Below, one piece after another: positions 5,601 to 52,224 of a stretch of DNA of 64,000 nt (position 1 is the first letter of the stretch; each line of letters starts with the position of its first letter). Position numbers and translations under genes: made by a program. The notes under the pieces were generated by a model. The model worked only from the letters and a program-made list of their open reading frames with translations, was not told the DNA's origin and did not search any database. Source of the DNA: Mobula hypostoma (lineage: Eukaryota); NCBI RefSeq assembly GCF_963921235.1, contig NC_086110.1, positions 37,696,001 to 37,760,000 on the forward strand. Reading direction: 5' to 3'.

Positions 5601-8600
5601 TGTGATTACAAGAACTAAAAAGGGCTTATTGCAATTGCAAAGGTGTTGCTGAAACCCCCCACATGGAGTGTTGGGTATAATTTTGGCATGGAACAGTGCA
5701 GCATGGATTCACTGAAATAGTTCTATGGATGGCAGCGTCTCATATGAGGAGAGATTGAATGGACCGTGACTATATTATCCAGAGTTTAGAGAAATCAGAA
5801 GGGAAGCGAGTCGTATTACTTTCTTGAAAAGCATGCCAGGCTAAATTCAGGGAGAATATTTGCTGCAACTGACCATTGTGCGGAGTTGACAATAAGATGC
5901 AAGCCAATGAGGACTGAGATGAAACAGTTCTTCACTCGGGAGAAGGTAAGTCCAGAGGGATGAGGAAACCTTGTCAGTGAGTACATTCTAATCAGAAATC
6001 AATCATAACGATCAGATGGCTAACGTATATTCTTACCACTCCAGCACCAGCCCCTCACCCCTGTTTAGAAGACTGTGCGTACATTCTTTTATGGATATTT
6101 GCTGAAGTTAATAGAGGTAATTACAATGGTTGTGGTCACAGAACCTGAGACTAGAGGTTGACATTTTAGAAAGATGAAGTAACAGTTACTTTGTGAGAAT
6201 CAAATGCTTTGCTTCCTTATATAATCAGGGTTGTGAATGCTGTTGAGTGCTGGCAAATGAAGAGTGCTTGACAGCTATTCCAAGCATGCATTCTCACTAG
6301 GGTTACCAGCATTGCATGAAAATTGTGATCCTTTAAAAATTCACACATTCCCCTTTCAAATATTTTCTAGCAACACATAAAAAATGCTGGAGAAACTCCA
6401 CAGGCCTGGCAGCATCTATGGAAAAAGAGTACAGTTGACGTTTCTGGCCAATATCCCTCAAGACTCAGAAAAAGATGAGGAGTCAGAGTAAGAAAGTGGG
6501 GGGAGGGGAGGAAGAACCACAAGGTGATAGGTGAAACCGGGTGGGGGAGGGGTGAAGTAAAGAGCTGGGAAGTTGGTGAAAGAGGTACAGGGCTGGAGAA
6601 GGGGGAATCTGATAGGAGCAGACAGAAGGCCGTGGAAGAAAGAAAAGAGGGAGGTGATAGGTGAGAAGGTAAGGTGAGAGGGAGAAATGGGAATGGGGAA
6701 TGGTGAAGGAGGAGGGAGAGTGGGCATTGCTGGAAGTTTGAGAAATTTATGTTCATGCCATCAGGTTGGAGGCTACCCAGACCAAATATAAAGTGTTGCT
6801 GCTCCAACCTGCGTGTGGCCTCATCACGACAGTACAGGAGGCCATGGACTGATATGTGGGACTGGGAAGTGGAATTCAAATAGTTGGCCACTGGGAAATC
6901 TCGCTTTTCCTGGCAGACAAAGCGTAAGTGCTTAGCAAAACGGTCTCCCAATCTGCGTCAGATTTTCTAGTCATTTTGAGGTACAGCACAGAAATAGGTT
7001 TTTCAGCTCACAGAGCCCATGCCAATCATCAACCATTCATTTACAGTGGTCCTACATAAATCCAATCTTCTCCACATTCTCATCAGCTCTCCCAGATTAA
7101 ACCATTTCCTTGACACAAAGGACAATATACAGTGGCCGATTAACCTACATACCTACACGTTTGTGCCGTTGGATGAATCTGGAGGACCTAGAGGAAACCC
7201 ATGTAGTCACATGGAGAATGTGTGAACAACATTCAGACAGGACCCAAGGATCTTCGGCACTGTGAGGCAGTAACTCCACCAAATGCACCACTGTGTCACC
7301 CTAAACTGCTCAGCTTTTGCTTCTGAAACTACTTCAACTAATGCATGTTCACTGCCTATTTTTCCTGATGGCATTCCATTTACAGCCTTTTTATGGATTG
7401 ACTTTAAGGAAGTTTCTTTCCAGCCTTAATTTAACATTAATGTTTCTATACAATATATCCATAATCTGGCCAAATCTATTGTTTACTGTGACCATTCTGA
7501 ATTTAATGTTTTTGTAATGAATTGCACTGATCAATCAGTTCTTTGATCTGAGTTAAAGTGGTTTTTTCTTCTTCCTGTATGCAGTAATGTTTCTAAATTA
7601 AAGGCAAAGTTTCATGGTATTTGGCAATGTCATTTCTTTTTATTTTAAAATATACAGTAAAATATATCAATTATTGTTTAGTTATATCACATCGCATAAA
7701 TAATCCTGCCCTACATATTTTGAAAACATTGCCCCTTTAATTTTCCCATTTCAAAATCTTTCTGGTTTCAGTTTCTGTTTTCCAAATTCTCTTGTGACAG
7801 TTAAGATGAGGTCGTGTGCATTGTTTTTACTTCTACAAAATGGCCTTCAAGCTAAGAGGAAAAATGAACTGTTTGCTGATTGATCTGATGATATTTTACA
7901 TTCTCTCTTTAGTGGGTAAGTGGATATCTCCAGTTAAATGCAGCTAATGAGGTACTGCAAGCAAATTTTACAACAAAGGACTTGTATGTTAGGCCTGGAA
8001 TCTTCTCTGTAAGGGCTGTTCAGGTACACTGCTAAACTTCCTGGTTATTTTAACTTGAAAGGGAAAATCTACATTCTTGTATGCTCCGATACCAAATCAC
8101 TATCAATGTTTGTTCTGTGAGTGAAAGGGAAGGGGAGAACAGGGGTGTGCTGAATGTAGACTTTGATTAACTCTTTGAGGTGCAGTCAGATTTGAACATA
8201 GAATAGTACAGCACAGTACAGGCCCTTCGGCCCACAATGTTGTGCCGACCCTCAAACCCTGCCTCCCATATAACCCCCCACCTTAAATTCCTCCATATAC
8301 CTGTCTAGTAGACTCTTAAACTTCACTAGTGTATCTGCCTCCACCACTGACTCAGGCAGTGCATTCCACACACCAACCACTCTCTGAGTAAAAAAACCTT
8401 CCCCTAATATCCCCCTTGAACTTCCCACCCCTTACCTTAAAGCCATGTCCTCTTGTATTGAGCAGTGGTGCCCTGGGGAAGAGGCGCTGGCTATCCACTC
8501 TATTCCTGTAATTATCTTGTACACCTCTATCATGTCTCCTCTTATCCTCCTTCGCTCCAAAGAGTAAAGCCCTAGCTCCCTTAATCTCTGATCATAATGC

Positions 8601-11600: not shown

Positions 11601-14600
11601 GCTGTAATCCTTCTAGGGAAGGAAAGCTATGTGGGTCTTGCTCATAACAGCTGCATAACATTATTAAACAGAGCACAAAGACGTAAGCAGCAGAATTCTA
11701 TTATCATAGACTTTGCAGTGGGTAGTTTAGCAGAATAACATTTGGGCTGGCATCCTGAGTCCACTGAGGAATTTGAAGCCCACTGTCTGGGAATCCAGCA
11801 GTCCACTAGAGGCTGGAGACTTGAGACCAGAGATGGCCTGTCATAGTGTTGGAGGACAGTGTGGCTGGGAGCAAGAAATGGGGCATGTTTTGTTGCTTGT
11901 TTTGTGTTATTCTGCCCAATATGATCAGCTTGCTATGTTGGCACTAGAATGTGTGGCTGCCCCAGCACATTCTTAGGTTGTATTGGCTGTTAACACATAT
12001 GATGTATTTCACTGATGTACATGTGATAAATAAATTTATGTCAATCAACAAATTGTTTTATGTTTCAATTTCTAATAGGCAAAATTTATAATGTGAAGGT
12101 CTTCTTTTCTATCATTTAGAAAAATATGGCTTTTTGAGGATAATGCATGGTGAGGAAGTGGAGCTGGAAATAGGCTTTCCAAATGTACTGGTAATTTTTT
12201 TTGAAAGGGAACTAATCAAATAAATTGAACCACATTAAAGAGGAACAACAAAATAAACAATGGCTGCTCTGAAATTATACTGCATGGTAATAATTTAACC
12301 ATATATAACCATATAACAATTACAGCACTGAAACAGGCCCTTCTAGTCCGTGCCGAACTCTTACTCTCACCTAGTCCCACCGACCTGCACTCAGCCCATA
12401 ACCCTCCATTCCTTTCCTGTCCATATATCTATCCAATTTAACTCTAAGTGACAACATCGAACCTGCCTCAATCACTTCTGCTGGAAGCTCGTTCCACACA
12501 GCTACCACTCTCTGAGTAAAGAAGTTCCCCCTCATGTTACCCCTAAACTTTTGTCCTTTAACTCTCAACTCATTTCCTCTTGTTTGAATCTCCCCGACTC
12601 TCAATGGAAAAAGCCTATCCATGTCAACTCTATCTATCCCCTTCATAATTTTGAACACGTCTGTCAAGTCCCCCCTCAATCTTCTACGCTCCAAAGAATA
12701 AAGACCTAACTTGTTCAACCTTTCTCTGTAACTTAGGAGATGAAACCCAGGCAACATTTTAGTAAACCTCCTTTGTATTCTCTCAATTTTATTCACATCT
12801 TTCCTATAATTCGGTGACCAGAACTGTACACAATACTCCAAATTTGACCTTACCAATGCCCTATACAATTTCAACATTACATCCCAACTCCTATACTCAG
12901 TGCTCTGATTAATAAAGGCCAGCATACCAAAAACTTTCTTCACCACCCTATCCACATGAGATTCCACCTTCAGGGAACTATGCACCATTATTCCTAGATC
13001 CCTCTGTTCTACAGAATTCTTCAATGCCCTACCATTTACCACGTATGTCCTATTTTGACTAGTCCTTCCAAAATGTAGCACCTCACATTTTTCAGCATTA
13101 AACTCCATCTGCCATCTTTCAGCCCACTCTTCTAACTGTCCTAAACCTCTCTGCAAGCTTTGAAAACCTTCCTCATCATCCACAACACCACCTATCTTAG
13201 TATCATCTGCATACTTACTAATCCAATTTACCACCCCATCATCCAGATCATTAATATATATGACAAACAACACCGAGTACAAATCCCTGAGGCACACCGC
13301 TACACACTGTCCTCCAATCTGACAAACAGTTATCCACCACTACTCTCTGGCATCTCCCATCTAGCCACTGCTGAATCCATTTTACTACTTCCATATTAAT
13401 GCTTAACGATTGAACCTTCCTAACTAACCTTCCATATGGAACCTTGTCAAAGGCCTTACTGAAGTCCATATAGACAACATCCACTGCTTTACCCTCGTCA
13501 ACTTTCTTAGAAACCTCATCAAAAAATTCAATAAGATTTGTCAAACATGACCTTCCACGCACAAATCCATGTTGACTGTTCCTAATCAGACTCTGTCTAT
13601 CCAGATAATTATATATACCATCTCTAAGAACACTTTCCATCAATTTACCCACCACTGACGTCAAACTCACAGGCCGATAATTGCCAGGTTTATTCTTAGA
13701 ATAAATTTAATTTAAAATGATAATTTAAAATCAATGTAACCCAAAGTTAGCATTTTCAGTTGAATTTGTATCAGTTGCAAATTAAATTAAACACTTCCAT
13801 TGGGATGTGTAAAATGGCACCTGATGTTTCCCAGCTCTTCGTGACAATTCATGTTTTACACCTTCCTGACATAAAGTGTAAGGTTTATGTAGCATGAAGT
13901 TCCCCTGGAGACTTGTGGCCCCAATCCAATACAAACATTTTGTATTTCTTAGCCATGAAGCTGATAGGAATTACATTTTTTTCAGTAGAATTTTACAAAC
14001 CAATTATTCTTTTTTAACCAATTAATGATTTGTTGTCAATCAAAAAACTATAGATGCTGGTAATCTGAAAAAGGACACAAAATGATGGAAACTCAGGTAG
14101 CATCTGTGAGGAGAAAAAGAATAGACATTTGTCAAGGCTGATAAACTGACATGTTTTAAAACTTATTTCATTTTGCACTTTCATCTTTTTAATATAGCTA
14201 CATTGGATTTGGAAGTCAGCCCAACAGTGTTGGATGCCACAATTGGTGAAGAAGTCCTACTAAGTTGCTTATTTTCTCACACCACTAAACTTGACCTGAG
14301 CTACATTGTGATCGAGTGGAACCAGAGAACAGGAGATAATGAGAAGGCTATTTGCCTGTTTGAGTTTGGAGAATATGAAATCTATAGACCTGGATCAAGT
14401 CTCTCTTTAAGCGAAATAAGCAAAGGAAATGCATCTTTACTCCTAAAAAATGTTACTATTAGTGACATTGGATCATACTCCTGTACAGTTACAATATTTT
14501 CTGATAAAAAAGTGGGGAGAGTTACTTTGTCGATTTCAGGTGAGTACAGAGATAATACCTGAAATCTGTCAAAACTGTGTTAGCTGAAAACTGGAAATGT

Positions 14601-17600
14601 TAATGATGATAAAAATTACCACACGTGTTTGGTGACTAACATTAGAAAATACACCCACATGCCAAAGAATTTCAGTGTTCATCTGCATAATGGTGGTGAT
14701 TTGAAATCCATTGTTAATTTTAAACATGAGACTGATTATTAAAAGTAGAAAAAGTGTTAAGAATAATTGAAGCAAAACCCAAAGAAGGTCAATATCCAAA
14801 GTATAAACAAGTGTCATAAAGTCATAGAAAAGTACATCTAGTCTGTGCCAAACCATTTAAACTGCCCACTTCCATCAACCTGCGCCGGGACCATAACCCT
14901 CCATACCACTACTATCCATGTACCTATGCAAACTTCTCTTAAATGTTGAAATCAAACTTACATGCACCACCTTTGCTGTCCACTCATTCCACACACTCAC
15001 AACCCTCTGAGTAAAGAAGTTTCCCCTCATGTTCCTGTTAAACTTTTCACCTTTTACACTTAACTCATGACATCTGGTTATAGTCCCATCCAATCTCAGT
15101 GGAAAAAGCCTGCTTGCATTTACACTATCTATACCCCTCATAATTTTGTGTACCTCTATCAAATCTCCTCTCAATCTTCTGCATTGCAAGGCAGAAAGTC
15201 CAGACCGATTCAATCATTCCTTGCTGGAGGCATTGATTAGATCAGATAATAACAGTGGTAAGAGAAAAAAGAGTGAACATTTCAGGGCAATGTCTCTTCA
15301 TTAGAAAAATTCTAAGAAGGGTGAGCTGGGCAAAGCTGGACAGATGGCCACTGAACAAACAAGATTTCATTGAACAGCACACAGACTCTGGAAAATGGGA
15401 GGAGTGGGGAGGGCATGCAACTTGCTCCATTGCAAAGCACCATGAACATGTTATATTCAAAGTGATACCAAATGAGAAAGCTTATGAAGGTACTACTACT
15501 ACTATTACGTCAACTCAGGCCTAAGGGGCCAGCGTCGGGCACGATGACGGACTCTCCACTTCTCCCTCTCCCAGATCAGTGTGTTCAGTTCATCTACATT
15601 AGCCGCGCCGCTGTCTTCTAGGATTGTGTTGACCATATTCTTGGGAGGGTGCCCAGGGTTCATCCTCCCGTGCTTGGGCTCCCATATGATGACTAGCCTG
15701 GCAGGTAGCTCAGGGTGGCGTAGACAGTGCCCCCTAGTTGCAGTCTTCTCGCCTCGATTTTAGTGGAGAGCACCGGTGGGTTGTTACAGAGCTCAAAGTT
15801 TGTTATGTGCTGTTGCCAATTCACATCAAGAGACATCCGGAGCATTCGTGTATAGCAACCATCCAGAGACTTGTGCATCGTCTTGTTGAGTGTCCACATC
15901 TCGCATCCGTACGTGAGAATGGACTCTATGACTGCTATGAAAATCTATGAAAATGCTATGAATCTCATGCAATATATATCCCGCTTCTTTTATTATTGTA
16001 GCACCTCCTGCAGTCTGGGTAAACACTGTAAATATTACAATTGAACCTGGTGAAGATAAAGCAATTATTTGTGAGATGCAGAACTTTTACCCAAAGAACC
16101 ACTCTGTCACTTGGTTGAAAAGTGGCTCAAAAGGCAATGGAAACCAGGTGGATGTCACATCCCAAGCAGTTTCCGGAACACCTCAGCAAAATCAGGATGG
16201 GACATTCAATCTGATTTCATTCCTAATCATCAAAGGAAACCAGTCAGATGATGGATCTTTTTATATCTGCCAAGTGGATCATGAAGCTTTAAAATCACCA
16301 GTGCAAAAAGCCATTAGTTTGACCGTAAAGGGTGAGTTATAATAAATGAGGTTGGTATCATTTCTCTTACGCCCTGTTTATTCTTATTTAGGGAACCTTG
16401 GTTAGAATTTTGTGTAACAGCCACATGATAAAGGCATCACTGAAAGAAGCAATCATCATCCAGTCCCTTGCCTAATGGTACATCAGTTCCTTAAAATTAG
16501 TCTGACTTGTTAACACTGTTACATGGTTTGCTGTGTTTCATTTAAAATAAGTTTTTTGTCGTTTATTTGCAATATGTACACAAAATATTTCAACAGAAAA
16601 ACTGCCAACCTTTGAACTCACTTTATCAGAAAATATACAGCAATAAAATAGTTTTATAGCTGCATTTCACTGACTATTTATACAATATCTGAATCATGCG
16701 GTTTCTAAATTATTTTTTGCGGTTTCATTGTCAAATTATGCAAGAAGAGAGTCATTTGACGTGAACATCTGACAGTTTTCAAAATTATACTCAGTAAATA
16801 CTTAATTAAATAAAAAAAATTTTGATCAATTAGTTCTCTGACCTAATGTGAAGGAGCCTCTGAACCAAACTACATGTGGGATATTAATGTAACGTGGATA
16901 TATTCTCCCACAGAGGGATGCATTGCCTTTATTTTTCAAATGAGGTACTATATTAAAGTGTGGTTTGTTTTCCAGGAATACCATGACACCATTTTAAAAA
17001 AGAGCTCAATGTTTCGATGACATGGTCAATGTTTGTCCTTCCCCAAGATCTTCCACCAGTACCAAAACCACTTTTCTGCTCATTATCACACTCAAAATGC
17101 TGGAGCAGCGGTTCCCAAACTTTTTTTAGTGCCGTGGGCCAATGCCATTAAGCAGTGGGTGCATGAACACCAGGTTGAGAACCCCTGTTCTAGAGTAGCT
17201 CTTCCAGTTGCTCTGGATTTCCAGCATCTGCAGAATCCTTTGTGCTGCTCATCGTCATTTGCTGTTTGAAGGAGCTTGCTGTGTTGAAATTGACAGGCTT
17301 GCTTCCTGCATCATAAGATTTCAGTTTGAATGTATTTCATTGGCTGCTAAGTGCTTTGGAATGTTCTGACAATGACACAAAAATATCAGACAAATGAAAT
17401 TCTTCATTTCTTTTGGAGAGTTTAGGTGAACGTTGCTAGAACCAGGGCTCGGGGAAACTCAAATTTGCACAGGAATACTGCTGCAATCGATACTCATCCA
17501 CTTGCTCTGCATAAATATGAAATCAATAGAATTCCCAGGCCCCAAAGCTTTATTGCCAAGCCAACATAGCTGAAAAATTATCAAAATCATACCTTTGGCA

Positions 17601-20600
17601 TCTACATTGATCAATTATTGGATCAATATTTGATATTGATAATATGATTTAGTTCTGAATCACTTGTATCTTTAAGTTTCCTCCCTAAGCTTTGTCAATA
17701 ATGAGACCATAAGACATAGAAGCAGAGTTAGGCCATATGGCCCATTGAGTCTGCTTCACCCTTCAACCGTGGCTGATTCTTTTTTTCCCCTTCTCAACGC
17801 CATTCCTGCCCTTCTCCCTGTAACCTTTGATGCCATGTCCAGTCAAGAAACTATCAATCTCTGCCTTAAATACACCCAATGCCTGGCCTCCACAGCTCTA
17901 TGTGGTAACAAATTCCACAAATTCACCACTCTCTAGCTAAAGAAATTTCTCCACATCTCTATTTTAAACAGACGCACCTCTATCCCAAGGCTGTGCCCTC
18001 TTGTCTAGACTCCCCCACCGTGGGAAACATCCTTTCCACATCTACTCTGTCTAGGCCTGTCAACATTTGAAATGTTTCAATGAGATCCCCCCCCCCACCC
18101 CACAACTTTCTGAATTCCAGCAAGTACAGACCCAGAGCCATCAAACGTTCTTTGTATGATAATCCTTTCAATCTGGGAATTATTCTTGTGAACCTCCTCT
18201 GAACCCTCTCCAATGCCAGCACATCTTTTCTTAGATGAGGAGCCCAAAGCTGTTCACAATACTCATGGTGAGGCCTCACCAGTGCCTCATAAAACCTCAG
18301 CATCACATCCCTGCTCTTGTATTCTAGACCTCTTGAAATGAATGCTAACATTGCATTTGCCTTCTTCACCACCAGTTCAACCTGCAAGTTAATCTTTAGG
18401 ATGTTCTGCACAAGAGCTCCCAAGTCCCTTTGCATCTCAGATTTTCAGATTTTCTCCCCATTTAGAAAATAGTCTGCACGTTTATTTCGATTACCAAAGT
18501 GCACGGCCATGCACTTTCCAACATTGTATTTCATTTGCCATTTTCTCGCCCATTCTCCTAATCTCAGTCCTCATGCAGTTTACCTGTTTCCTCAACACTA
18601 CCTGCCCTTCCACCATTCTTTGTATCATTTGCAAACTTGGCAGCAGTCCATCTATTCCATCATCTAAATTATTAATATAGAGCATAAAAAGAAGCGGTCC
18701 CAACACCAACCCTTGTGGAAAACCACAAGTCACTGGCAGCCAATCAGACAAGGATCCTCTTATTCCTACTCACTGCCTCCTACCAATCAGCCAATGCTCT
18801 AACCATGTCAGTAACTTTCCTGTAATACCATGGGCCCCTAACTTGGTAAGCAGACTGATGTATGACACCTTGTCAAAGGGCTTCTGAGAGTCCAAATATA
18901 CAACATCCACTGCATCCCCTTTATCTATGCTACTTGTAATCTCAAAGAAATCCAACAGGTTTGTCAGGCAAGATTTTCCCTTAAGGAAGCCATGCTGACT
19001 TTGTCCTATCTGGTCCTGGGTCACCAACTACACGTAATGCATATGTGCAAATTTGAAATGTGTTGAATCAGACAATAGAAATGTCAAAATAGTTGTGAGT
19101 AGATTGCCATTAATCTCTTAGTCAAAATATAAAGCATTACTTTTGGAAGAGTATAGTTTCCAGCATTAGATACTTTAAGTCTCAGTTTTTTCAACTATAT
19201 TTGGAATATAGTTTGGATCGACTATATTGATATAACATACATCTCTTTCGAGTCACCCCATAGCACATTACAGCCAATGACATGTTTTCTAAAATACTGC
19301 TGTTGTTGCATTGGAAATGGTGTTTTGTACTGCGCTGCAACAAAGTTTAAAATTCTGGTCTGTGATTGCAAGTAGCAGTCAGCTCAAAGAAACTATAACA
19401 AATAATCAATAACATCTGCTTGGCTTTTTGTCTTCATAGGACCCAAATTAACTAGCAGATCAAGAGTATTACTCACAATTGTTTTGACATTTCTGATCAC
19501 AGCAATGTCAACTGTCTGTTTTGGAACTTGCCTTTTCTACAATAAAGGGATAGGTAAGTAATAGAACTCTTAAAACTTATTTTTGGGATGAGGTTGAGTT
19601 TACCAGGGCAGTATTTACTTACCCTTAATTTTCCCAAGAAGGTGATGATGTCCTATCTCTTCGAGTAATTGGGGTTTGTGTGATGGTAGTGATGGTGATG
19701 TTGCCTCAGTGTGTTTGAATAAAATACTTCAGTGATACTAAGCTTCTGACAGTGATCCTTTCCTCTTGTCCCTAGTGCTTTATTGTACTGTAATATTTTT
19801 TTCAGTTGCACAATATTTAACTAAGCATAGCTGTCTGACTAGATTTGCATACTCAATGTGTTTTAGTGTTCAGTCCATCTATGACCTTGACTGCTTTTGA
19901 AAAAAAAGTAACTTCACTGCGATTGTTAAAAGCAGCAAATGCTGGAACTATTCAGCAGGTCAGTCCACATTGGTGGGAGGAGAAACAGAGCGAACGTTTC
20001 ACATCCAAGGGTTTTTGACATGAAGCATTGATTCTGTTTCTCTCCCCACGCATGCAGCCTGGCCTCCTGAGTATTCCCTGCATTTTCTGCTTTCAGTTAA
20101 GATCGCCAGTATCTGCATCTTTTATATATATATATTTGAACTGGAATTGATCATTGTCCGTCAATCAGATTAGTAAAAGAGCATTCCTTAAAAAAATAAA
20201 GCAAGAGGATCAGCAAAGTAAATAAGGAGTGGGAAACGGTCTGGAAGGTTAGATCACATGAGATCCAAGGTGAGATAGCCAATTGGATGAGAATATTGGC
20301 AGCATGGTTAATAAGTTAGCATATCTAAGATTGCAGTGAATTCTAGATTAACTGAGCCGGTGTGCGGACAAATGACAGATGGGTAAATGTGAAGTCTTCC
20401 ATTTGGGAAAGACAAGCAAGTGCAGCAAAGTGAATGGTAGGGTCCTAGTGCTTGCTGTAGACTGGAGACCCAGGGGTGCAGGTGCATGATTCCGTGGAAG
20501 GGGCAACACACACAGACATATACTTAGGAAGGCATCAGGATATTGAATACAACAATTGAGAACATCATGTTACAGTTGTACAAAATGTTAGTTAGGCCAC

Positions 20601-23600
20601 ATTTAGAGTACTTCATGCAGACCTGGCTGTCCAACTGTAGGAAGAACATCATTCAGTTGAAAAGGATACAAAAAAGATTCAGGAGGATGTTAATAGAACT
20701 GGAGGGTTTGAGTTATAATGAGGGGCTGGATAGGCTAGCCTATTGTCCCGTGGAGCATTAGAGGCTGAATGGTGGCCTGACGGAGAACAATAAAATCAAG
20801 AGGTGAAAAGCCACCATCTTTTTTCCAGAATAGGGCAGTTCAAAATGAGAGGGCCTAGGCTTAAAGTGAGTGAGGAAAAAAAATAAAAGAGGCCTAAGGG
20901 ACAATGATTTCACGCAGAGGGTGGTCCTGTATGGATCCTGCTGCCAGAGGTATGTAGAGTGGTGTACAGTCACAATGGTTAAAAGGCATTTCAGCAGGTA
21001 CATGGAAAGGAAAGAGTTAGAGGGCTATGAGCCTAAGGGACACCTCAGTCTGACATGATCCAGGTGGGCTGAAGGGCCTGTATTCCATGCTGTATAGTTA
21101 TATGACTCTGATTCTACAAGTAGCAGAGCCTTTTTTTTTAGTAAAGAACAACAAATTGATTATGTTTCTCTTTGATTTTCAGTTACTGCCAGGGTGACAA
21201 ATATTGTTAAATCAAACCACTGGAACACCAACGCTCCACTTTCTCTTGCCTGTGCAGTTTACTGGTTCGGAACAAAACCAATCGTTGTGTCTTGGTACAG
21301 GGAGGAGGTGGGTAAATTCCAAAGAGTCCTCGTTGGTAAATGGGACAACACTTCACACTGTGCAAAAAGGAAGTCAAAAGGGTATTTTCAGAATGAGCAA
21401 GAAGATAAAGCAATGTTGTTCCACAAAGGAGAATATGATATTGCTGTGACTTGGAACAGCCACGAAAGTAGTGGAATGTACAGTTTAATATCTCAGCTCA
21501 CCTTCAGATGTGCAAGAGCTGCGGAAGGAAAGCAGGAGTACTATTTTTCTGTCCAGCATGGCTCACTGAAGCAAAACATTTTAAGATCCGTTATTGTAGA
21601 AATAGAAGGTGAGTTGCCGTTATTTTATTGCAGAATAGGCCAAAATAAAATTTGAAATATTTTAAACTAAACTAAAATAGACATTGATAAGAAATAGAAA
21701 CCCTTTGGAACTCTTTGTTCTGTACAATCTATAGCCGCCAGCAGTCCATTCCACACACTCACCATTCTCTACGTAAAAAAAACTTACCCCTGACATCTCC
21801 TCTGTACCTATTCCCCAGTACCTTAATACTATGCCCTCTCGTGCTAGCCATTTAAGTCCTGGGAAAAAACCTCTGACTATCCACACAATCAATGCCTCTC
21901 ATCTACTTATACACCTCTATCAGGTCACCTCTCATCCTCCGTCGCTCCAAGAAGAAAAGGCCGAGTTCACTCAACCTATTCTCATAAGGTTTGCTCCCCA
22001 ATCCAGGCAACGTCCTTGTAAATCTCCTCTGCACCCTTTCTATGATTTTCACATCCTTCCTGTAGTGAGGTGACCAGAATTGAGCACAGTACTCCAAGTG
22101 GGGTCTGACCAGGGTCCTACATAGCTGCAACATTACCTCCCAGCTCTTACACTCAATCCCATGATTGATGAAGGCCAATGCACCATATGCTGCCTTAACC
22201 ACAGAGTCAACCTGCGTAGCAGCTTTGAGTGTCCTCTGGACTCGGACCCCAAGATCCCTCTGATACTCCACACTGCCAAGAGTCTTACTATTAATGCTAT
22301 ATTCTGCCATCATATTTGACCTACCGAAATGAACCACCTCACACTTATCTGGGTTGAACTCCATCTGCCACTTCTTAGCCCAGTTTTGCATCCTATCAAC
22401 GTCCCGCTGTAACCTCTGACGGCCCTCCACACTATCCACAACACCCCCAACCTTTGTGTCATCAGCAAACTTACTAACCATCCTTCCACTTCCTCATCCA
22501 GGTCATTTATAAAAATCACGAAGAGTAAGGGTCCCAGAACAGATCCCTGAGGCACAGCGCTGGTCACCGACCTCCATGCAGAATATGACCCATCTACAAA
22601 CGCTCTTTGCCTTCTGTGGGCAATCCAGTTCTGGATCCACAAAGCAATGTCCCCGTGGATCCCATGCCTCCTTACTTTCTCAATAAGCCTTGAATGGCAT
22701 ATATGTTAAGATTTCATTTTGTAATATTTTCTGGTATATCACATAGTATATGCCACTAGTGGAAAGAGTGAATTCAAGTTAAAAAAAGGGTCTCTCACCT
22801 GAAATGTTTCTCTGTCTACAGATGTGGGGTGACCTGCTGAGTATATTTTTTGTTTTAGATTTCCAGCAGATTTTGTTTTTTTAATTTTTCTCCACCACAG
22901 GAATTTGTCTAGTCAAACTTTTTTTGATCTCTCACTTAAGTAGGGGTCCCACACCACCAGGTTCAGAACAGTTATTGCTCTTCAACCATCAGGCTGCTGA
23001 AACAGCGTGGATAATTTCACTCACCTCAACACTGAACTGATTCCACAACTTATGGATTCACTTTCAATGACTTGACAACTCACGGTCTCAGTATTATTTA
23101 TTTACTTGTCTATTCATTCTTTATTTGTTTATTTTAAATGTGCACAGTTTTGTCTTCTTTAACACATTGGTTGTTTGTGAGTCTTATTTGTGTGCAGTTT
23201 TTCATTGATTCTATTGTATTTCTTTGTTCTACTGTGAGTGACTGAAAGAAAATTAATCCCATGGTAGTGTACGATGACAAAAGCATACTTTGATAATAAG
23301 TTCACTTTGAAATTTGAAGTAAGGGTATCCCTTGGGAAGGAAGATGTTCAATGCAGTCTCACTCACTGCAGTCTCAGACAATCTTCTGTAATAGGAGACA
23401 TTATTCCACTTGGTTTTCAGCTGCACTGTCAAGTTAACATTATATAAATCATGCACAAGACCACCTAGGTCCACCTAAAATTCCAGTGTTCTCACTCCCT
23501 GCCCACTTAAGAAAATTGTGCTTTTCTATTTTTACTATTGAACTGGATAACCCTACTTGCCTCACAGATCCCTTTAAATCTTTCTCTTCACACCTTAAGT

Positions 23601-29600: not shown

Positions 29601-32600
29601 TGGGGTGATCCCACTAATGTCACCACACTTCTGGTGCCACGATAACATGCCCACAACTCACCAGCCCTAACCATATATCTTCGCAATGAGGGAGGAGATC
29701 GGAGCGCCCAGGTAAACCCAGACCATCACAGAGCGAACATACAATCTCCTTACAGACAGTGGCAGATCTAATTGGCGATCACTGGCGCTGTACAATGATT
29801 GTTCTAACCCCTATGCTACCATGCACCATGGTTTAAAGTTCAAAGTACACTTAATATCAAAGTATGTATACATTATACAACCTTGAGATTTGTCTCCTTT
29901 CAGGCTGCCACAAAACAACCCATAAAAAAAAGACCATCAAACAGCCGGCGTGCAGAGAAAAATCAAATCACGCAAACTAATAAGAGTAAACAGAAAGTAT
30001 TCAGAGCGCAAGTGAGTCCGCAGACACAGACCCAGAGCATCCGTAGCAGGCCCAGTTCATCGCAGAGCTGTGTAACCATCGCGGAACAGCCAGCAGAATC
30101 GGCCTTACCATCTCTTCTGGTCCCGACACCCTGCCGTTTCAATCTGGCCTGGCTTTTAACTCATCCAAACATTGCTGCAGCACCCAGACCCTGTCACTTC
30201 GATACACTCCAGGCCTGGACCCCGCCACCACATTTTGGCCCGTACCTGACCTTTCCAAACTGGCCTGGCGCTTAGATCTATTAAACCACAGGTCTTCCCT
30301 GACTCTCGGTTTAGGTGGACAGGCCTTGATTTTTCCTCATCTCCGCTCGCCCTGACTTTGCCTCACCTCCGCTTCTTCAAATCTGCCTCAACCTCACTTC
30401 CACTTGCTTCGACACTCAACCCTTCCTCACCTCCACCCACCTCTCCGTTGTTTGTACTGATCGTTTACCATAAATGTTATGAGAAGGAGTGTTGTCAATA
30501 AAGCATTTGGTTGTATTTCCTGATGAAGGGTCTCGGCCCGGAATGCCGACTGTACTCTTTTTCCATAGGTGCTGCCTGACCTGTTGGGTTCCTCCAGCAT
30601 TTTGTAGGTGTTGTTTGGATTTCCAGCATCTGCAGGCTTTCTCTTGTCTGTAGTTGTGTTTTTTGTTTTGTTTGCCACCAACAAGTAGTCGCTGGGCCTC
30701 ACCAGCGACTTCTTAAACTGGAAATTATAGAGTGCTGTATAAGTTACATTTCTTCAATACTTTTATGTTCTTAAATAACATTCCTCATAGGTGTTGATGA
30801 CGATATTGAATATTTTCCAACACAAATGAAGTGCAAAGACTGGGCACTGCAGGCTATTGAAGAAGGGCGCCGCACTATAGTTAATTACATCAGTCCAAAC
30901 ATCCATCCGCTCCTAAATATTTTAACAGAGAAGAAAATAATCTCTGAGAATGATCAGAGTGATATAAAAGCTAAGCTAGACGTCGATAAAGGCCGGACTC
31001 TTCTGGACATAGTGAGCCACAGAGGGCAGCGGGCTTGTGTTCAATTTTTCAATGTCGTACAGAATACTGATGATCTTTATCCTGGCATCAGAAAGTACCT
31101 AACATCACTTTTGGAATCCTACACTGAGAAAGATGACAGACCTGTTTTTGATCTCCTCTGTGAAGGCAGACCAACGAGTTTATTTCAGGTCAACAACGAA
31201 AAATCCGAAATAATCAATATTCCTGAAGGTAAGTGTGCTTACATATTTAGAATTAATGGACATTTCTGTATTTAACAATAATGAATCATGAAAAGCTTGA
31301 ACCCATCTCTTTGCAAATTCCATAATAATATATCAAAGTACTGTGACGCAGATATGCTCTGTCACAGTACTTTGGTATATAGCTGGTTGAGGTGAGTACT
31401 TGACGGCTTGAAGCCCTCACACATTAAAAAAAGATGAAAATTATCCCTCCATGGGACTATTCAGTTAAAAGGCCTCCAAACATAGCCCTCAACCTAAGGA
31501 CATAATTTCTCTTGAAGTATTCTGTTCTCCATTTTGAATTTAGTTCATCATGTAGGCAAAGTCATCTAGTCACCATCAGCAATCTTCCAGCCACCTCCAC
31601 GGTCAATGGTACATGTACATTAGGTAGTTTTGTCAAATCCCCAGCTCCAAGCAAAGCACTTTTACAGTTTTATTCAGTTTAAATAACATTCCTCAGGAAT
31701 TTCTGGATTGGATTAGCTGGAAGTTGTGTAGTTGTTCAATATAATTTGATAAGAAATGTGTATTTGTGCAAAGTGCTTCTGAATGAATAGGCTCATTGAG
31801 TAAAGGACCTCTCTCACATTCCCTTACAATGTCCCAGGTTTATCTGCACATACTTCACACAGTGAATAATTCATGTGCCATTGTTGCCTCACTTTTATTG
31901 AATATAAAGGTGATTTGTAGAACAATTTTACACCAGATTTTTGCAGAATTTATACCTAAAATGTACCCAAGATTGTATTCTAGCAACGATTAGATTTTTA
32001 TTTTTTCCTTAGTATTCCTGTGAATTTAGGAGAAGTTAATTGTTTTTCAAATAGAGCTACACCTTAACAATATGTGATACCAAGAATCCAATTTGCGATT
32101 GAGTTTACTGATAGGCTCTGCCTACCATATTTGTGGAAAGGAGTATATTACTGTTTGAACAATATTGTTGTCTACCTTCATATCATTCTAGAAGTAGTAT
32201 TTAAACTCTATTGAACATGTTTTGTATTGTCTTACTTACGTGTAATAGAGCTTCTAGTACTTATATTCCAATGATCTACCTTCTGTATAAGACTTCATTC
32301 TTGCAAGGCATCACCTCACAGCAAATGTTATCCCATCATTACAGTTACAATGTTCATTGTAAATCAACCTCACAGATATGAAAGGTTTGATTTAATTTCA
32401 AACATAAGAGATTCTGCAAATACTAAAAATCCAGAGTAACGCACAAAATGCTAGAGGAACTCAGCAGGTCAGGCATCATCTATGAACAAAAATGAAGAGT
32501 CAACATTCAGCCAAAGACCCTTGAAAGGTCCTGGTGCCCTGTTGAAAGGTTTTGGCCCGAAACATCATCTCTTTATTCCACTGCATAGATGCTGCCTGAC

Positions 32601-35600
32601 TTGCTGAATTCCTCCAGCATTTTTCATGTGTTACTTTAGTTTAATTTTTATGATTTGTGTTCTAGTATGTGCCCATTTTATTACTGTATCTTATACATTA
32701 TGTTTTATTACTCACTTTGGATGCTGCATTCATTCTAATGTTCTGTCTTTTGTAATTATAGAAATCCTTAAAGCAACTGATAATCACAAGAGCATATTGA
32801 GAGCTCAGATGGAGAGAATAAAACCATACTTTGCATTTGATAACTCTAGTCCATTGCTGCAGGAGCATTTTACCAGCCTGGTCATTCTCAATGTCCAAGA
32901 AAGGAACAAAACTGAACATGAGCTGCTCCAGCACAGAGACTATACAGCCTGCGAGTATACAGATTTGCAGGAGCTTCTTTCCCCATCTGCACCAGGGAAG
33001 CCACCACCACGAATCACACTCGTGCAGGGAGTGGCAGGTATAGGAAAAAGCATTATGATGCAGAAGCTCGCCTACAGTTGGGCATGTGGAACAGGTTACA
33101 CTAGATTTTATATGTTGCTGTATTTCAGTTTCCGAGAGTTAAACACAATCACTGAGAAAATCAGTCTGACCGAGCTTATTATACGTAGTTATCCTCATTT
33201 GACTGTATTATGCAAAAAACTCCTGCAATTTCCAGCTGGAATTCTATTTTTGCTTGATGGATTGGATGAATTCAAATGGCCTCTTGATTTTAATGTTCAT
33301 TCAGTTGATAACCCGTCCGTTTCTGAACACATTAACCACTTGATTGTAAGCTTCATCAAGGGAGATCTCCTGCGTGACTCAACTGTTCTTATCACATCCC
33401 GCCCAACCTCAATTGATTTAGACCACAAAACCTATTTTAATCGGTGTGCTGAAATTTTAGGGTTTTCCAGGAATGAAATTGCAAAATACTTTGAGAAGTG
33501 CCTCAAGAATAAAACATTTGCTGATCATGTCTTCCAGACTGTGAAGAACATTGACTCCTTGTATGGGCTCTGTTACGTCCCTGCGTTTTGTGACATTTTG
33601 TGCTTCTATCTCCGTAAATCATTTCACTCTAAAGGCAAATGGTCCAATCTGTCTTCATTTCCAAAAACGATCACAGATTTATTCCTTCGTTTCACCAAGT
33701 GTTTACTTGTCTGTACCGGTGGTGAGGAAGAAGACCCTGAGTCCTTCTGCATAGAAGCTGATGAAGACAAGAATGAAATTATTAACTTGGCACAACTTGC
33801 ATGGGATGGAGTCATCAATAAAACAATAATATTTTCATCTAAAGACGTTGAAAAAAACATCTCTCAAAAGGCCAAAGTAATAAAATCCTTCTGGAAAAAA
33901 ATCCTCACTAAAGAGAGCCTACAAATGATGCATTCTCATATTTGGCAGTTTTTCCATCTGACTCATCAAGAGTTTTTTGCAGCACTCTATTGTATTTCTG
34001 GTGTGGATCATGTGCACAAGGCCTTCAGCTCAAAGGGCAGCACTTTTGAGATTGTGCTGAGGTTCACTGCTGGCTTGGTCTCTCGCAGCAACAGAAAACT
34101 TGTCCAACAGTTGGTGCCTGAACACCAGGTCAAAGAAAGAGAAGTCTTTGCAGCTATTGAAAATGCTGCTGCTGTTGACATTCCAAAAGAAGACAAGCTA
34201 ACTCCTGAAAATATCAAAAAATATACAGCACACAAAAGACAAAAACTAACAGCCTCTCATTGTCTGTATGAAGCAGCAAATGAAGATCTAACAAAATCAG
34301 TTGCTTCCCAAACAAGTGACTGTGTGAATTTTTCTTACATCACTTTGAATGTGACTGACTGCACTGTGATTGCAAACCTCCTTTCCCATCACACAACTAT
34401 TGAAACACTCGAACTGGATGGGTGCAAAGCTGGAGCTGCTGGTTTCCAAAGACTGAAGTCTATTTTTTCCAGAATCAAAACACTGAGGTAATGAAATAGA
34501 ACATAGAAATCTACAGCACATTACAGGCCCTTCGGTCCACAATGATGTGCCGACCACGTAACCAACTCTAGAAACTGCCTAGAATTTCCCTAGCGCATAG
34601 CCCTCTATTTTTCTAAGCCTATCTAAGAAACTATTAAAAGATCCTATTGTATCCGCTTCCATCGCCACCGCCGACAGTGCATTCCACACACCCACAAGTC
34701 TCTGTGTGAAAAACCTCTGACATCCCCTTGGTCCCTATTTCCAAGCACCTTAAAACTATGCCCTCTCATGTTAGCCATTTAAGCCCTGGGAAAAAGCCTC
34801 TTGCTATCCACACGATCAATGCCCCTCATCATCTTATATACATCTATCAGGTCACCTCTCATCCTTCGTGGCACAAAGGAGAAAAGGCCAAGTTCACTCA
34901 ACCTATTCTTATAAGGTACGCCCTCCAATCCAGGAAACATCCTTGTAAATCTCCTCTGCACTCTCCCTATATTATCTGCATCCTTCCTGTAGTGAGGTGA
35001 CCAGAACTGAACACAGTACTCCAAGTGGGATCTGACTAAGGTCTTGTATAGCTATAACGTTACTTCTCGGCTCTTGAACTCAATCACACGGTTGATGAAT
35101 GCCAACACACCATATGCCTTCTTAACAATAATGTCAGCCTGCACAGCAGCTTTGAGTGTCCTTTCAACACAGACCCCAAGATCTCTCAGATCCTCCGCAC
35201 TGCCAAGAGTCTTACCATTAATACTATATTCTGTCTTCAAATTTGACCTACCAAAATGAACCACCTCACACTTATCTAGGTTGAAGTCCATTTGTCACTT
35301 CTTTGCCCAGTTCTGCATCCTATCGATATTTCATTGTAACCTCTGACAACCCTCCAGACTATCCACAACACCCCAACCTTTGTGTCATCGACACACTTAC
35401 TAACCCACCCCTCTACTGCTTCATCCAGGTCATTTATAAAAATCACAAAGAAGAGGGATCCCAGAACAGATCCCTGCAGAACACCAACCTCCATGCAGAA
35501 TACGAACCATCTACAACCACCCTTTGCCTTCTGTGGGCAAGCCAATTCTGGATCCCGAAAAAAAGGTCTCCTTGGATGCCATGCCTCCTTAGTTTCTGAA

Positions 35601-38600
35601 GGAGCCTTGCATGGGGAACCTTTATCAAATGCCTTACTGAAATCCATATACACTACATCCACTGCTCTACCTTCATCAATGTGTTTTGTTACATCCTTAA
35701 AGAATTAAATCAGGCTTGCAAGGCACAACCTGCCCTTGACAAAGCCATGATGACTATCCCTAATCAGATTACGTCTCTCCAAATGCTCATAAATCCTGCC
35801 TCTCAGGATCTTCTTTAACAACTTGCCCACCACTGAAATCAGTCTGACTGGTCTATAATTTCCTGGATTATCTCTACTCCCTTTCTTGAACAAGGGAACA
35901 ACATTTGCTATCCTCCAATCCTTCAGTACTTCTCCCATCCCTATTGACGACGCAAAGATCACCTCCAGAGGCTCAGCAATCTCCTCCCTCGCTTCCCACA
36001 GTAGCCTGGAGTATACCTCATCCAGTCCCGGTGACTTATCTAACTTAATGTTTTTCAAAAGCTCCAGCACATCCTCTTTCTTAATGTCTGTACGCTCAAG
36101 CATTTCAGTCATCCCCACAATTGCCAAGGTCTTTTTCCCTGGTGAATACTGAAGCAAAGTATTCAATAGGTACCTCCGCTACCTCCTTCGACTCTGTGCA
36201 CATGTTTCCACTATCACTCCTGATTGGTCCTATTCCCACACGGCTCATCCTCCTGCTCTTCACATACTTGCAGAATGCCTTGGGGTTTTCCTTAATCCTG
36301 TTCACCAAGGTCTTTTCATGTACCCTTCTAGCTCTCCTAATTTCATTCTTAAGCTCCTTCCTAGCAACCTTGGAATTTTCTGGAGCCATAACAGTACCTA
36401 GTTTCTTGAACATTTTGTAAGCTTTTATTTTCTTAACTGGATTTTCTACATACATTGTACACCATGGTTCTTTAACTCTACCATTCTTTCCCTGCCTCAA
36501 TGGAACATACCTATGCAGAACTCCATGCAAATGTTCCCTGAACATTTGCCACATTTCTGCCATGCATTTCCCTGAGAACATCTGCTCCCAATTTATGCTC
36601 CCAAGTTCCTGCCTAATAGCATCATATTTCCCCCTAACCCAATTAAATATTTCCCCAAATTGTCTGTTCCTATCCATCTCTAGCGCTATGATGAAGGAGA
36701 TAAGTTGTGGTCACTACCTCCAAACTGCTCTCCCACTGAGAGATCTGACACCTGACCAGGTTCATTTTCCAATGCCAGATCAATTACAGCCTCTCCTCTA
36801 GGTGGCTTATCTACATATTGCATCAGGAAATCTTCCTGAACACACCTTACAAACCACCCCATCCAAATCCCTTACGCCAAGGAGATGCCAATCAATATTA
36901 GGAAAGTTAAAATCACCCAGTGAGGTTGGTTGCTCATCCTGATATGCCTAGATGATTCCATTACTCCTATAGACAATTCTTAAATAATGTCAGTGACCCA
37001 GCTTCAACCACTCTCTCAGGCTCTGCTTTCCAGGTACTTACCACTCCTTGGGTGAAGGCAGTCCCTTCATAACCCCTCCAAAACCTTTCTCCCATACCCT
37101 AAATCTTCTATGTCCTAAAAACCCTCATATACCTTATGCCCCTAGTTATAAAAATTACCCTATCTACACTCTTCAGAATTTAAATAAAAACTCAACCAAA
37201 TCTCCTTTTATCCTCTTCTGCTCCAGGAAGATGAATAGTGAGCAAGAAGAAATAATTTATGATCTTTAGTTTATGGGGAAATACTAGCAAAACATCAATA
37301 GCATGATTATAACTCAGTAAATGAATAATTCATTGCTTGAAAAATGCAGATACAAGGAGAGCAAAAGATTATTATTGCAGCACACACCAAATGCTGGAGG
37401 AACTCAGCAGGCCAGGAAGCATTGTGGAAAAGAGTCAACAGTCGATATTTCAGGCCGAGACCCTTCATCAGGGCAAAAGATAATTATTGCTTTGTTTTTA
37501 CAGTTTAGAGGGAAACATGCTAGAAGATGAAGGAGCAGAGATTATTGCTGATGCTCTCAAAAATGAAACGTGTAGAATAGAAACCTTAAGGTAAAACTTC
37601 CAATTCTTTACACATTTATGCACAATATTGAGAAGTATTGTTTTATTTGAAGTTGTACACTAGTAACATTAAGATTAAGCAAGAAGTTTCAGAAGTATAA
37701 ATTCAATGAATGTAGAATGAAAACCAATAGGGTTAAAGTTTCTCAGCTTCATTCTAACAAGGTCACTCGTACATTGTCTCAAGGCTGTGGCCTCGTAAAC
37801 ATGGATTTAAAATCCTTTACTTTATATATCTTAGAAACCTGAAAAGGCACAATTTATTCACTCTGACCAGTTGGCATCCTTTTGTGTTAACCCCATCACC
37901 CAGCTCTTGGTTCAGAGCTCCTCTGTGCCTAGGTGATGCAAGACATCCAGACGTTCATTGGGACATTTCTTAGATGCTCTCAGCAAACCAGCTTTAACCA
38001 CTTCCGGTGCATTTCAGGCACTTTACCATCTCTTCCCTTTACCCTCTCTTCCCTTTACCCTCAACCTGCATTATCTAGTTTATCTACTCTGATATGGAGA
38101 GAAGTTTTCTGCAGTCTACCTTACCCATTTCCCATTTAATTATATGCATTTTAGTCACGTCTCCTCTTAACCTTCTCTGCTCCATGACAGGGATCATCCT
38201 GGTGAATCTCCTTTACAATTAATTCTCTAAATCTATCTGGTAATTAATTCTGAGCTATATAACATATAAATTGTGTACACATATTGTATATTACTGTCAT
38301 GAACTCTTAGGACCAGTGCATGGCATCGGAGGACATCAAGCCTCGGTGCTCCAATGCACCCAAGCATCAGTGATTTGTTTTAACTAAAACTTGTTGAGTA
38401 ATTGGTTTAATCATTAAGTTTCCCTTGTGCTTTCATGCCACTTATTTTTTTGAATGTGGGTTCCTCGTACATCCTGTTTTTAGTTTGTTGTGTTTTAATT
38501 TTGATATGCATGGGGTTTCCGTGCTATATGCATTATTTAAGTTAGTCATGAATAGCGTTCATCACTGAGTCCTGAAGTTGGAGTAGGAACGAACTAACGT

Positions 38601-51128: not shown

Positions 51129-51935
51129 TAGTCCATTAGCCAGGACCCCAAATTTGGGCCACCGATACCATCTGGGGGGAGTAATTCTTATAGTGATTTT
51201 TGGCAAGGTATCACCCCTAGTGCTAGAAAATATGTGATAGCATTGCAGCAGTGGTCGCTTTCATAGTAAACTCCATGCTATAAGAACCATGATCCCAGGT
51301 GCTTTGCCTATGATAAGATGAATTATGCCAGGTACCTGTCCCCTTACTTTGCTCAGATGATGAACCTCCCGGAGAAGAATCCTCCTCTGTCTGAGGCCTT
51401 CAAGACAGGCCAATTCTCAGTGCAGCTGTCAAGTAACAACCCCTTTGGGCAGATCCCTGTGGACCAGGCCATTGAAGCCACAGTGAACAAAGACACACGG
51501 ACTCCTGGAGGCACATCACAGTTCAGCCTGAATGCTGGAGCTATCAAGCATTACGGCATAACAGCTGAGCACCGCAGTGCATTCCTGGGACAGTTAAGGG
51601 AGATGGTGCAAGGCAACAAATCAGAGCTTTGTCATGCGGAGCTACAGCGGCCAAGAATCCAGAAAGATGAGGAAACAGTTTCAGCAGCGGTTAGCCTCAT
51701 ACATGAATGGGTCAACCCATTTGCAGAGAAGTGGGACCTCACTAGCATCTCTAGGGCAAAGGCAGCCCCCAAGGACATTGCCTCCAACCTGATGAAGGCA
51801 TATGAGATTGGTGATCAATGCTACGCAACCTTCAGGGATGAGAGACTAGAGGAAGACCCACCAGCAAAGAAATTCCATGACCCAATGAAAACCAACAAGC
51901 TGAAAACATTCAGTAATATGTGTAAGAAGAGAGAA
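51129..51935 (+). mobile_element. DNA transposon fragment, probably Academ-like
   Basis: ORF 51318-52016: NYARYLSPY...LP...F..GQFSV...DQAIE..NKD.RTPGG...NPF motif series as recalled from Academ-type proteins; the GC-richer block starts with TAG at 51129. Family assignment is from memory. Confidence 0.5.
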
Positions 51936-52224
51936 GAGGTATTTCTTTTTTTCTCTGTAAATGCTGCGGGTGGTATATGGAAATATTTACATACTTTGAT
52001 AATAAATGTATTTTGAAATGTAAAGCAAAGCATTAGTGTCATAGTCACTGTATTTTCTGATCCATATCCTTTACAAAATAACATAAAATTGAAGCCATCT
52101 TCATACAGTTACATGTCAGTCACAAGAGTATCACTGTGCTGAATTCAGCTATAACCCTAGACATCTGTGATACAAGTCAAGGGAGTCACAGTTATTTTAA
52201 TATCACAGAAGGAAAATCACATGA

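Follow-up and report, generated by a model that had tools for sequence, protein, structure and literature searches.

C1-set immunoglobulin (Ig) domains are a signature of the extracellular molecules of adaptive immunity, among them antibodies, T-cell receptors, major histocompatibility complex (MHC) molecules, tapasin and B7-H6, and to our knowledge all known members of the set are extracellular or lumenal. Human B7-H6 (NCR3LG1), a ligand of NKp30, carries a cytoplasmic tail with signalling motifs and a gag-like stretch, but is not known to have an Ig domain or a NOD-like receptor (NLR) there. The CARD-NACHT-LRR module of NLRs is cytosolic machinery in every studied case; NOD1, NOD2 and NLRC3 are soluble proteins that depend on lipidation or on partner proteins for access to membranes. 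Here, we analysed a gene of the ray Mobula hypostoma that appears to join these worlds. It lies on the + strand of a stretch of 64,000 nucleotides (RefSeq assembly GCF_963921235.1, contig NC_086110.1, positions 37,696,001 to 37,760,000; hereafter the window), and its fifth exon (exon 5) encodes an Ig-like domain between a transmembrane (TM) helix and a CARD. Our preferred reading, to which we assign a probability of roughly 0.7, is that this domain is an expressed, folded β-sandwich of C1 type. It would lie in the cytosol as the first segment behind the TM helix of a type I protein with a B7-H6-like ectodomain and a CARD-NACHT-LRR part of the NOD1/NOD2/NLRC3 kind, serve there as spacer or docking platform, and stem from an ancient V-C1-TM-Ig gene.

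Several described systems share parts of this arrangement. The C1-set (PF07654), comprising antibody CL and CH domains, MHC α3 and β2, the IgC domains of tapasin and TAPBPR and the C1 domain of B7-H6, has its profile and its B-, C-, E- and F-strand residues in common with the ray domain; the latter differs in lacking the B-F disulfide, in having a predicted C' strand plus loop (~32 residues) and in standing behind a TM helix, presumably in the cytosol. Human B7-H6 is likewise a type I membrane protein and is, among known structures, the best match to the ectodomain encoded here. Butyrophilins (e.g. BTN3A1; V-C-TM-juxtamembrane-B30.2) likewise tie a B7-like ectodomain via a juxtamembrane module to a cytosolic sensor, an arrangement that allows inside-out signalling by BTN3A1. 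Their module is a coiled coil and their sensor B30.2, whereas in the ray protein these places are taken by an Ig domain and by CARD-NACHT-LRR. Titin, obscurin, myosin-binding protein C and filamin hold Ig β-sandwiches without a disulfide in the reducing cytosol, as the ray protein would; however, these are I-set or filamin-type domains of cytoskeletal proteins, unrelated to the C1-set in sequence and not anchored in a membrane. NOD1, NOD2 and NLRC3 share CARD-NACHT-LRR with the downstream part of the ray protein, which adds a signal peptide, an ectodomain made of Ig domains, a TM helix and a candidate Ig-like spacer. Disulfide-free cytosolic Ig folds (titin, filamin) and NLRs are thus each already known. 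Proposals of NLRs with a TM segment have to date concerned sponges and further invertebrates (PMC12909245). Our full-text searches of open-access papers and preprints returned no description of a vertebrate transmembrane NLR that bears a C1-set-derived domain on its cytosolic side.

Exon 5 lies between a TM exon and the exons of an NLR

Exon 5 spans 21183-21608 (+), comprises 142 codons and is of phase 1-1. It is bordered by AG ahead of 21183, preceded by a polypyrimidine tract, and by GT behind 21608 as part of the donor GTGAGT; the frame from 21185 runs through 141 codons with zero stops. It is the fifth of 13 exons on the + strand, all with canonical splice sites, which joined conceptually give exactly the 1319-residue RefSeq model of Mobula hypostoma. 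The product reads, in this order, signal peptide, V, C1, TM helix, Ig-like domain, CARD, NACHT and LRR; Pfam places V-set, C1-set, CARD and NACHT in the exons expected, and exons 2 to 7 (V through NACHT) are all entered in phase 1. RefSeq names the model "NLR family CARD domain-containing protein 3-like" (NLRC3-like), and automatic annotation under this name hides the receptor architecture.

Among the entries of the Protein Data Bank (PDB), human B7-H6 matches the V-C1 ectodomain best (E = 1.8e-28), with B7-H3 behind at 5.5e-23. The extracellular part accordingly presents itself as a membrane-distal V and a membrane-proximal C1 domain of a type I protein closest to B7-H6. Downstream, CARD, NACHT (Walker A GVAGIGKS), HD2 and six LRR exons lie in one reading frame, as in NLRs of the NOD/NLRC type, and the NACHT region finds NOD2 (5irl) as its best PDB match (E = 5.2e-62).

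RNA contigs from four runs were aligned to 15900-21700 of the window. In all four, only exonic words of this stretch were present, and the contig joints 16330>19439 and 19551>21181 leave GT..AG ends on the skipped parts. Single contigs of 3523-3586 nucleotides in three runs lead from 16000-16330 through 19439-19551 to 21181-21611 with zero mismatches; the fourth run has the identical joints on shorter contigs. Judging from the exonic-only words and the GT..AG joints without mismatches, the contigs therefore represent spliced RNA. Ahead of 16000, the loose end of the contigs corresponds to the final codons of the V exon. Past exon 5, the three contigs run on for 2250 nucleotides, compared to 2251 for the CARD exon (438), the NACHT exon (1726) and the first LRR exon (87) together, and a break after the first LRR exon is the expected stop of an assembler at repeated 84-nucleotide LRR exons. 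The alignments overrun the exon 5 donor by three letters (GTG), which are common to the intron and the start of the CARD exon. Among the joints listed, none connects the C1 donor to a site beyond the TM exon (22 weaker joints come in addition to these). The preliminary description of this DNA, made from its letters alone, had proposed an exon at 21183-21608 behind the TM exon, with its product between membrane and CARD. The coordinates, AG/GT borders and open frame proved exact and the RNA joints agree with them, while the position of the product follows from the 13-exon reconstruction.

The exon 5 product is related to C1-set domains

Profile alignments were built from eight elasmobranch orthologues of the exon 5 domain and from eight ectodomain C1 domains. 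Compared by hhalign, the two profiles match with a probability of 88% (E = 3e-6; 21% identity), whereby the B-C strands and the E-F-G strands of both domains are paired. The motifs of exon 5 pair with those of the extracellular C1 exon (16002-16331) in the MAFFT and hhalign alignments alike, and the strand pattern E-F-G is common to both exons (LIS.L, Y..V.H..LK). In a profile search of the PDB (hmmsearch), the constant domains of Ig kappa and of heavy chains ranked highest, with E-values from 1.6e-5. Moreover, seven of the eight orthologues matched Pfam C1-set at E < 0.1 (best E = 4.6e-6) with no other family recurring, and the clusters nearest to the domain in the ESM Atlas are C1-set. The relation is visible by profile methods only: plain BLASTP of exon 5 against the C1 exon was not significant (E = 0.36), and phmmer of the single exon 5 product against the PDB gave marginal Fab matches only (E about 0.01). 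Judged from these homologies, the exon 5 domain is a diverged C1-type Ig-like domain.

The C1-set hallmarks of the domain, the strand-C Trp (VSW) and Y-Y/S-F-x-V-x-H, are invariant except for the Cys. The B-F disulfide that characterizes the C1-set is lacking: the B-strand Cys is kept in 8/8 species, while the F-strand position is occupied by Phe in 8/8. A canonical B-F disulfide is impossible in every elasmobranch examined because of this exchange. Furthermore, no other Cys of the exon 5 domain is conserved across the eight species. Compared to the ectodomain C1, two blocks of 15 and 17 residues (~32 in total) are added between the C and D/E strands. These features had been read from the Mobula sequence before. 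The three hallmark motifs then quoted are present letter for letter and take part in the pairing with the ectodomain C1; the replacement of the F-strand Cys by Phe extends, in the orthologue Cys survey, to all eight elasmobranchs; and the 30-35 extra residues placed between the C and E strands correspond to the two blocks.

The domain is conserved in rays and sharks

The same architecture is found in Mobula, Hemitrygon, Pristis, Narcine, Pristiophorus, Heptranchias, Heterodontus and Scyliorhinus, i.e. in rays and sharks, with the TM helix and the ~32-residue insertion present in all eight species. Across them, 37 columns of the exon 5 domain are invariant, eight of these within the insertion. 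The invariant set includes the core pattern C, W, SLISQL, Y.F.V.H, which belongs to strands B, C, E and F, as well as the insertion residues, and the latter suggest a binding site.

The insertion (21320-21420; residues about 46-80 of the exon product) holds invariant R, L, KW, Q, F, G and D and a conserved YFQ.E.E stretch. Though predicted to be partly disordered, it may carry a putative linear binding motif. A TRAF-type motif in the YFQ.E.E stretch was considered and dropped, since by eye it fits some species only.

Two further observations concern the orthologues. In the predicted isoforms X4 of Narcine and X2 of Pristiophorus, the CARD exon (phase 1-1) is skipped and the Ig-like exon kept, so that these CARD-less models join the Ig-like domain straight to the NACHT region. 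In addition, the ectodomain C1 of Narcine has Ser at the B-strand Cys, which is kept in 7/8 species; loss of a canonical Cys therefore also occurs extracellularly in this family.

Structure prediction suggests a C1-like sandwich with an extra strand

Next to the sequence profiles, we considered predicted structures. AlphaFold2 (AF2), run on the alignment of the eight orthologues, gave a best model with a predicted local distance difference test score (pLDDT) of 62.8 and a predicted template modelling score of 0.62. In this middling model, strand B comprises residues 22-30 and strand C residues 35-43, followed by an extra strand C' (48-55), a disordered stretch (59-79) and strands D, E, F and G. 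The extra C' strand and the disordered loop set it apart from the canonical seven-strand ABED/CFG sandwich of C1 domains, which has neither C' nor C''. ESMFold2 on single chains of the domain reached a pLDDT of 63-65, similar to the AF2 model of the domain alone.

Foldseek with the AF2 model returned the IgC domain of TAPBPR first (query TM-score, TMq, 0.59 and 0.55). Further matches were fish IgM Fc, H2-DM, IgNAR C and class II β2, interspersed with single V domains (nanobodies). In an exhaustive structural alignment CL came first (Z = 10.6, root mean square deviation 2.3, 101 residues), and IgE Fc, the C domain of shark UrIg2, HLA-DP β2 and B7-H6 C1 (Z = 10.2) followed; titin domains are also among the structural matches (Z = 9.5). 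The call of the fold rests on homology and one middling model rather than on a confident prediction. A two-copy homodimer prediction of the domain (score 0.01, mark 0.32) weighs neither way on pairing. Structure prediction and a profile search of the 142-residue product had been proposed as checks at the outset; the profile search was significant (E = 3e-6 and 1.6e-5), whereas the AF2 model is middling and unstable in a longer construct (see below).

Position relative to the membrane

The protein has an N-terminal signal peptide and one hydrophobic helix of 25 residues, which is conserved in the eight species and appears in AF2 as a single long helix at the TM exon. From these two features, everything behind the helix should be cytosolic, which is also the compartment of CARD-NACHT-LRR machinery in the NLRs studied. 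N-glycosylation sequons are distributed unevenly: two in the V domain are conserved in 8/8 species and one in the C1 domain is found in 6/8, while no sequon of the exon 5 domain is common to more than two of the eight species. The isoelectric point of the exon 5 domain is 7.1-9.2 (at least 8 in 7/8 species), and that of the ectodomain is 4.3-6.0, with the exception of the Narcine C1 at 7.8. The absence of shared sequons, the single conserved Cys and the basic isoelectric point are three independent, indirect signs that agree with a cytosolic position. The loss of the F-strand Cys is consistent with a reducing compartment and is no proof of one.

The TM exon also holds a Cys-containing stretch (19515-19535; VCFGTC), with Cys residues at the cytosolic end of the helix, one of them invariant in the eight species. 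Their position is typical of palmitoylation, for which they are putative sites.

A number of points weigh against a folded cytosolic domain. With a mean pairwise identity of 60.7%, the exon 5 domain is the least conserved of the globular modules (V 77.5, C1 74.7, CARD 68.9, NACHT 82.0, LRR 81.6%). The alignment given to AF2 consisted of eight sequences with an effective number (Neff) of 1.8, and fold confidence is middling: two of five models exceed a pLDDT of 55, while the other three stay at about 30. When a TM-Ig-CARD construct was modelled, the Ig part fell to 20-34, compared to 79-93 for the CARD. The Mobula domain alone scores 19.3-19.4 bits with Pfam C1-set (PF07654), below the cut-off of 21, and over strands A-C only. 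As to its surroundings, the cytosolic side is deduced from the signal peptide and one TM helix, and the junction from Ig to CARD from the RefSeq models of eight species, the reading frame and the contig-length arithmetic. Finally, the disulfide is missing from some Ig domains outside the cell as well, and the Phe alone therefore says little on the compartment.

The points on folding could be read as the mark of a decayed relic, i.e. a C1 descendant that no longer folds stably and serves as a flexible, partly disordered linker between membrane and CARD. Low and context-dependent AF2 confidence, the predicted disorder of residues 59-79, the lowest conservation among the globular modules and a Mobula sequence just below the Pfam cut-off all fit such a linker. 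The 37 positions invariant across rays and sharks, however, include the cores of strands B, C, E and F and the insertion, and the length of the domain is kept in all eight species and in the lungfish protein described below. An alternating hydrophobic β-strand pattern would not persist in a pure linker, and single chains in ESMFold2 reach a pLDDT close to that of AF2. We hence consider the relic unlikely, though it is the alternative that we take most seriously.

The points on topology bear on another explanation, in which the domain is extracellular or lumenal: the hydrophobic exon would be non-spanning or skipped, or the Ig product would be separate from the NLR product. C1-set domains are otherwise found outside the cytosol, topology is deduced here, and with these exons all of phase 1-1 skipping would preserve the frame, the splice evidence consisting of the joints listed. 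Yet among these joints the donor of the C1 exon leads to the TM exon only, in four runs, and the same contigs carry exon 5 and ~2.25 kb downstream of it. Neither the conserved hydrophobic helix of 25 residues nor the lack of conserved glycosylation sites, together with one conserved Cys only, fits an extracellular position, and a lumenal CARD-NACHT-LRR would be without known partners. This explanation strikes us as highly improbable.

A candidate spacer between ectodomain and NLR

Returning to the folded cytosolic domain that we favour, its most likely role would be that of a spacer and docking platform, for which the juxtamembrane segment of butyrophilins is the nearest analogue. Beyond the usual C1 strands, the domain would have acquired a C' strand and a ~20-residue loop with invariant positions. 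It would offer a docking surface and set the distance and orientation of the CARD-NACHT oligomerization unit below the membrane. In this manner, a B7-H6-like ectodomain at the surface could be coupled to a NOD2-like NLR assembly in one or both directions. As the domain is, in the models, the only structured element between membrane and CARD, it probably sets the geometry of the crosstalk between ectodomain engagement and NLR oligomerization.

Should the domain be cytosolic, the C1 fold would be able to do without its disulfide under reducing conditions. The domain would then also mark the very point at which a B7-family surface molecule and an NLR were welded by phase-1 exon shuffling. The exon 5 domain is a defined handle for deletions, swaps and interaction screens.

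The post-TM Ig module may predate the NLR fusion

In an exhaustive search of 1.84 billion representatives, the elasmobranch NLRs formed the only strong cluster, next to three weak ones. One of the weak ones is the lungfish model XP_043938022, a computed gene model, for which BLASTP gives a single colinear segment over Mobula residues 16-431 (E = 3e-31). The segment spans the signal peptide, V, C1, the TM helix and a post-TM Ig-like domain with the same insertion and domain length; in the lungfish domain, the F-strand Cys position is occupied by Val. Behind this shared signal-V-C1-TM-Ig part the two proteins diverge: the ray protein continues with the NLR, whereas the lungfish model lacks an NLR and goes on to ~7 more C1-like domains. 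The suspicion that post-TM Ig domains occur in non-mammalian B7-H6-like proteins, voiced in the preliminary description, finds support in this model.

The preliminary description had also seen in exon 5 a duplicated phase 1-1 C1 exon, and a lineage-specific tandem copy of the gene's own C1 exon, set behind the TM exon at the NLR fusion, would account for the common phase 1-1 and the common E-F-G strand pattern of the two exons. The C1 type and the phase hold. The descent from the neighbouring exon is not supported: the profile similarity to the own C1 (E = 3e-6, 21% identity) is no greater than that to unrelated constant domains (E = 1.6e-5), and the lungfish protein presents the colinear architecture with the same insertion, no F-strand Cys and no NLR. 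A local copy is in our view distinctly improbable.

Since the lungfish protein has V-C1-TM-Ig without an NLR, the module would rather be older than the elasmobranch NLR fusion. If the lungfish model is right, V-C1-TM-Ig predates the split of cartilaginous and bony fish, and the NLR exons came later. In our favoured reading of a folded cytosolic domain, the Ig module would thus have been inherited from an ancient B7-H6-like gene that was already V-C1-TM-Ig, and the NLR exons would have been added downstream via phase-1 exon shuffling.

A more far-reaching idea is that elasmobranchs and lungfish retain, from early jawed vertebrates, B7-H6-like molecules whose tail starts in an Ig domain of C1 type without a disulfide. 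It would be the first example of a C1-set domain at work in the cytosol, and in elasmobranchs it would couple a surface Ig ligand or receptor to a NOD-like signalosome. We regard this idea as tentative and put it slightly short of even odds. If true, the ray protein would be the first vertebrate transmembrane NLR, and could serve outside-in signalling or an inside-out report of cytosolic danger to NKp30-like receptors.

The C1-like array of the lungfish model (residues 272-1203) deserves a separate remark. The F-strand Cys is missing from three of its domains, and a second TM helix is absent. The array is either an extended run of Ig domains in the cytosol or an artefact of a glued gene model. 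A search for relatives of the lungfish post-TM domain returned the lungfish protein itself only. The other two weak clusters of the exhaustive search, from bichir and tree frog, were rejected as specific relatives, as each score adds up numerous weak C1 hits; both proteins are long C1 arrays, and their domains behind a hydrophobic segment keep the canonical Cys pair.

Remaining exons and neighbouring features

All further exons lie on the + strand as well. The coding part of exon 1 (7840-7915) holds the start codon and the signal peptide (Kyte-Doolittle peak 2.16) and was located by tblastn of orthologue N-termini and by the exact reconstruction of the model. Exon 2 (14198-14539) encodes the Ig V-set domain of the B7-H6-like ectodomain (Pfam V-set, E = 2.9e-12). 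Exon 3 (16002-16331) encodes the C1-set domain of the ectodomain, in which both canonical Cys are present (Pfam C1-set, E = 8.8e-14; RNA contigs). Exon 4 (19440-19553), of 114 nucleotides and phase 1-1, supplies the TM helix, as judged from a Kyte-Doolittle peak of 2.37 over 19 residues, AF2 and the RNA joints. Exon 5 (21183-21608), with the diverged C1-type Ig-like domain, corresponds to residues 288-430 of the RefSeq model. It is followed in frame by exon 6 (30791-31228) with the CARD (Pfam CARD, E = 1.4e-10; AF2 pLDDT 79-93).

Exon 7 (32762-34487) contains NACHT and helical domains (Pfam NACHT, E = 2.1e-32; NLRC4_HD2, E = 5e-9). The six LRR exons 8-13 (37504-47374) were placed by tblastn and the exact reconstruction, with Pfam LRR_6 found in the Narcine orthologue. 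They lie at 37504-37590, 38789-38872, 40982-41065, 42051-42134, 43409-43492 and 47290-47374, the last including the stop codon.

Fragments of reverse transcriptase of the long interspersed nuclear element (LINE) type lie in introns at 17064-19003 (intron 3) and at 12374-13706 (-), with Pfam RVT_1 for 12374-13339. RNA contigs are heaped on 17064-19003 at a depth in the thousands, presumably from other copies of the repeat. On the 3' side of the gene, an open frame of 248 residues at 51270-52013 (+) has no Pfam match, and a zf-RVT domain at 58715-59287 (+) derives from a retroelement.

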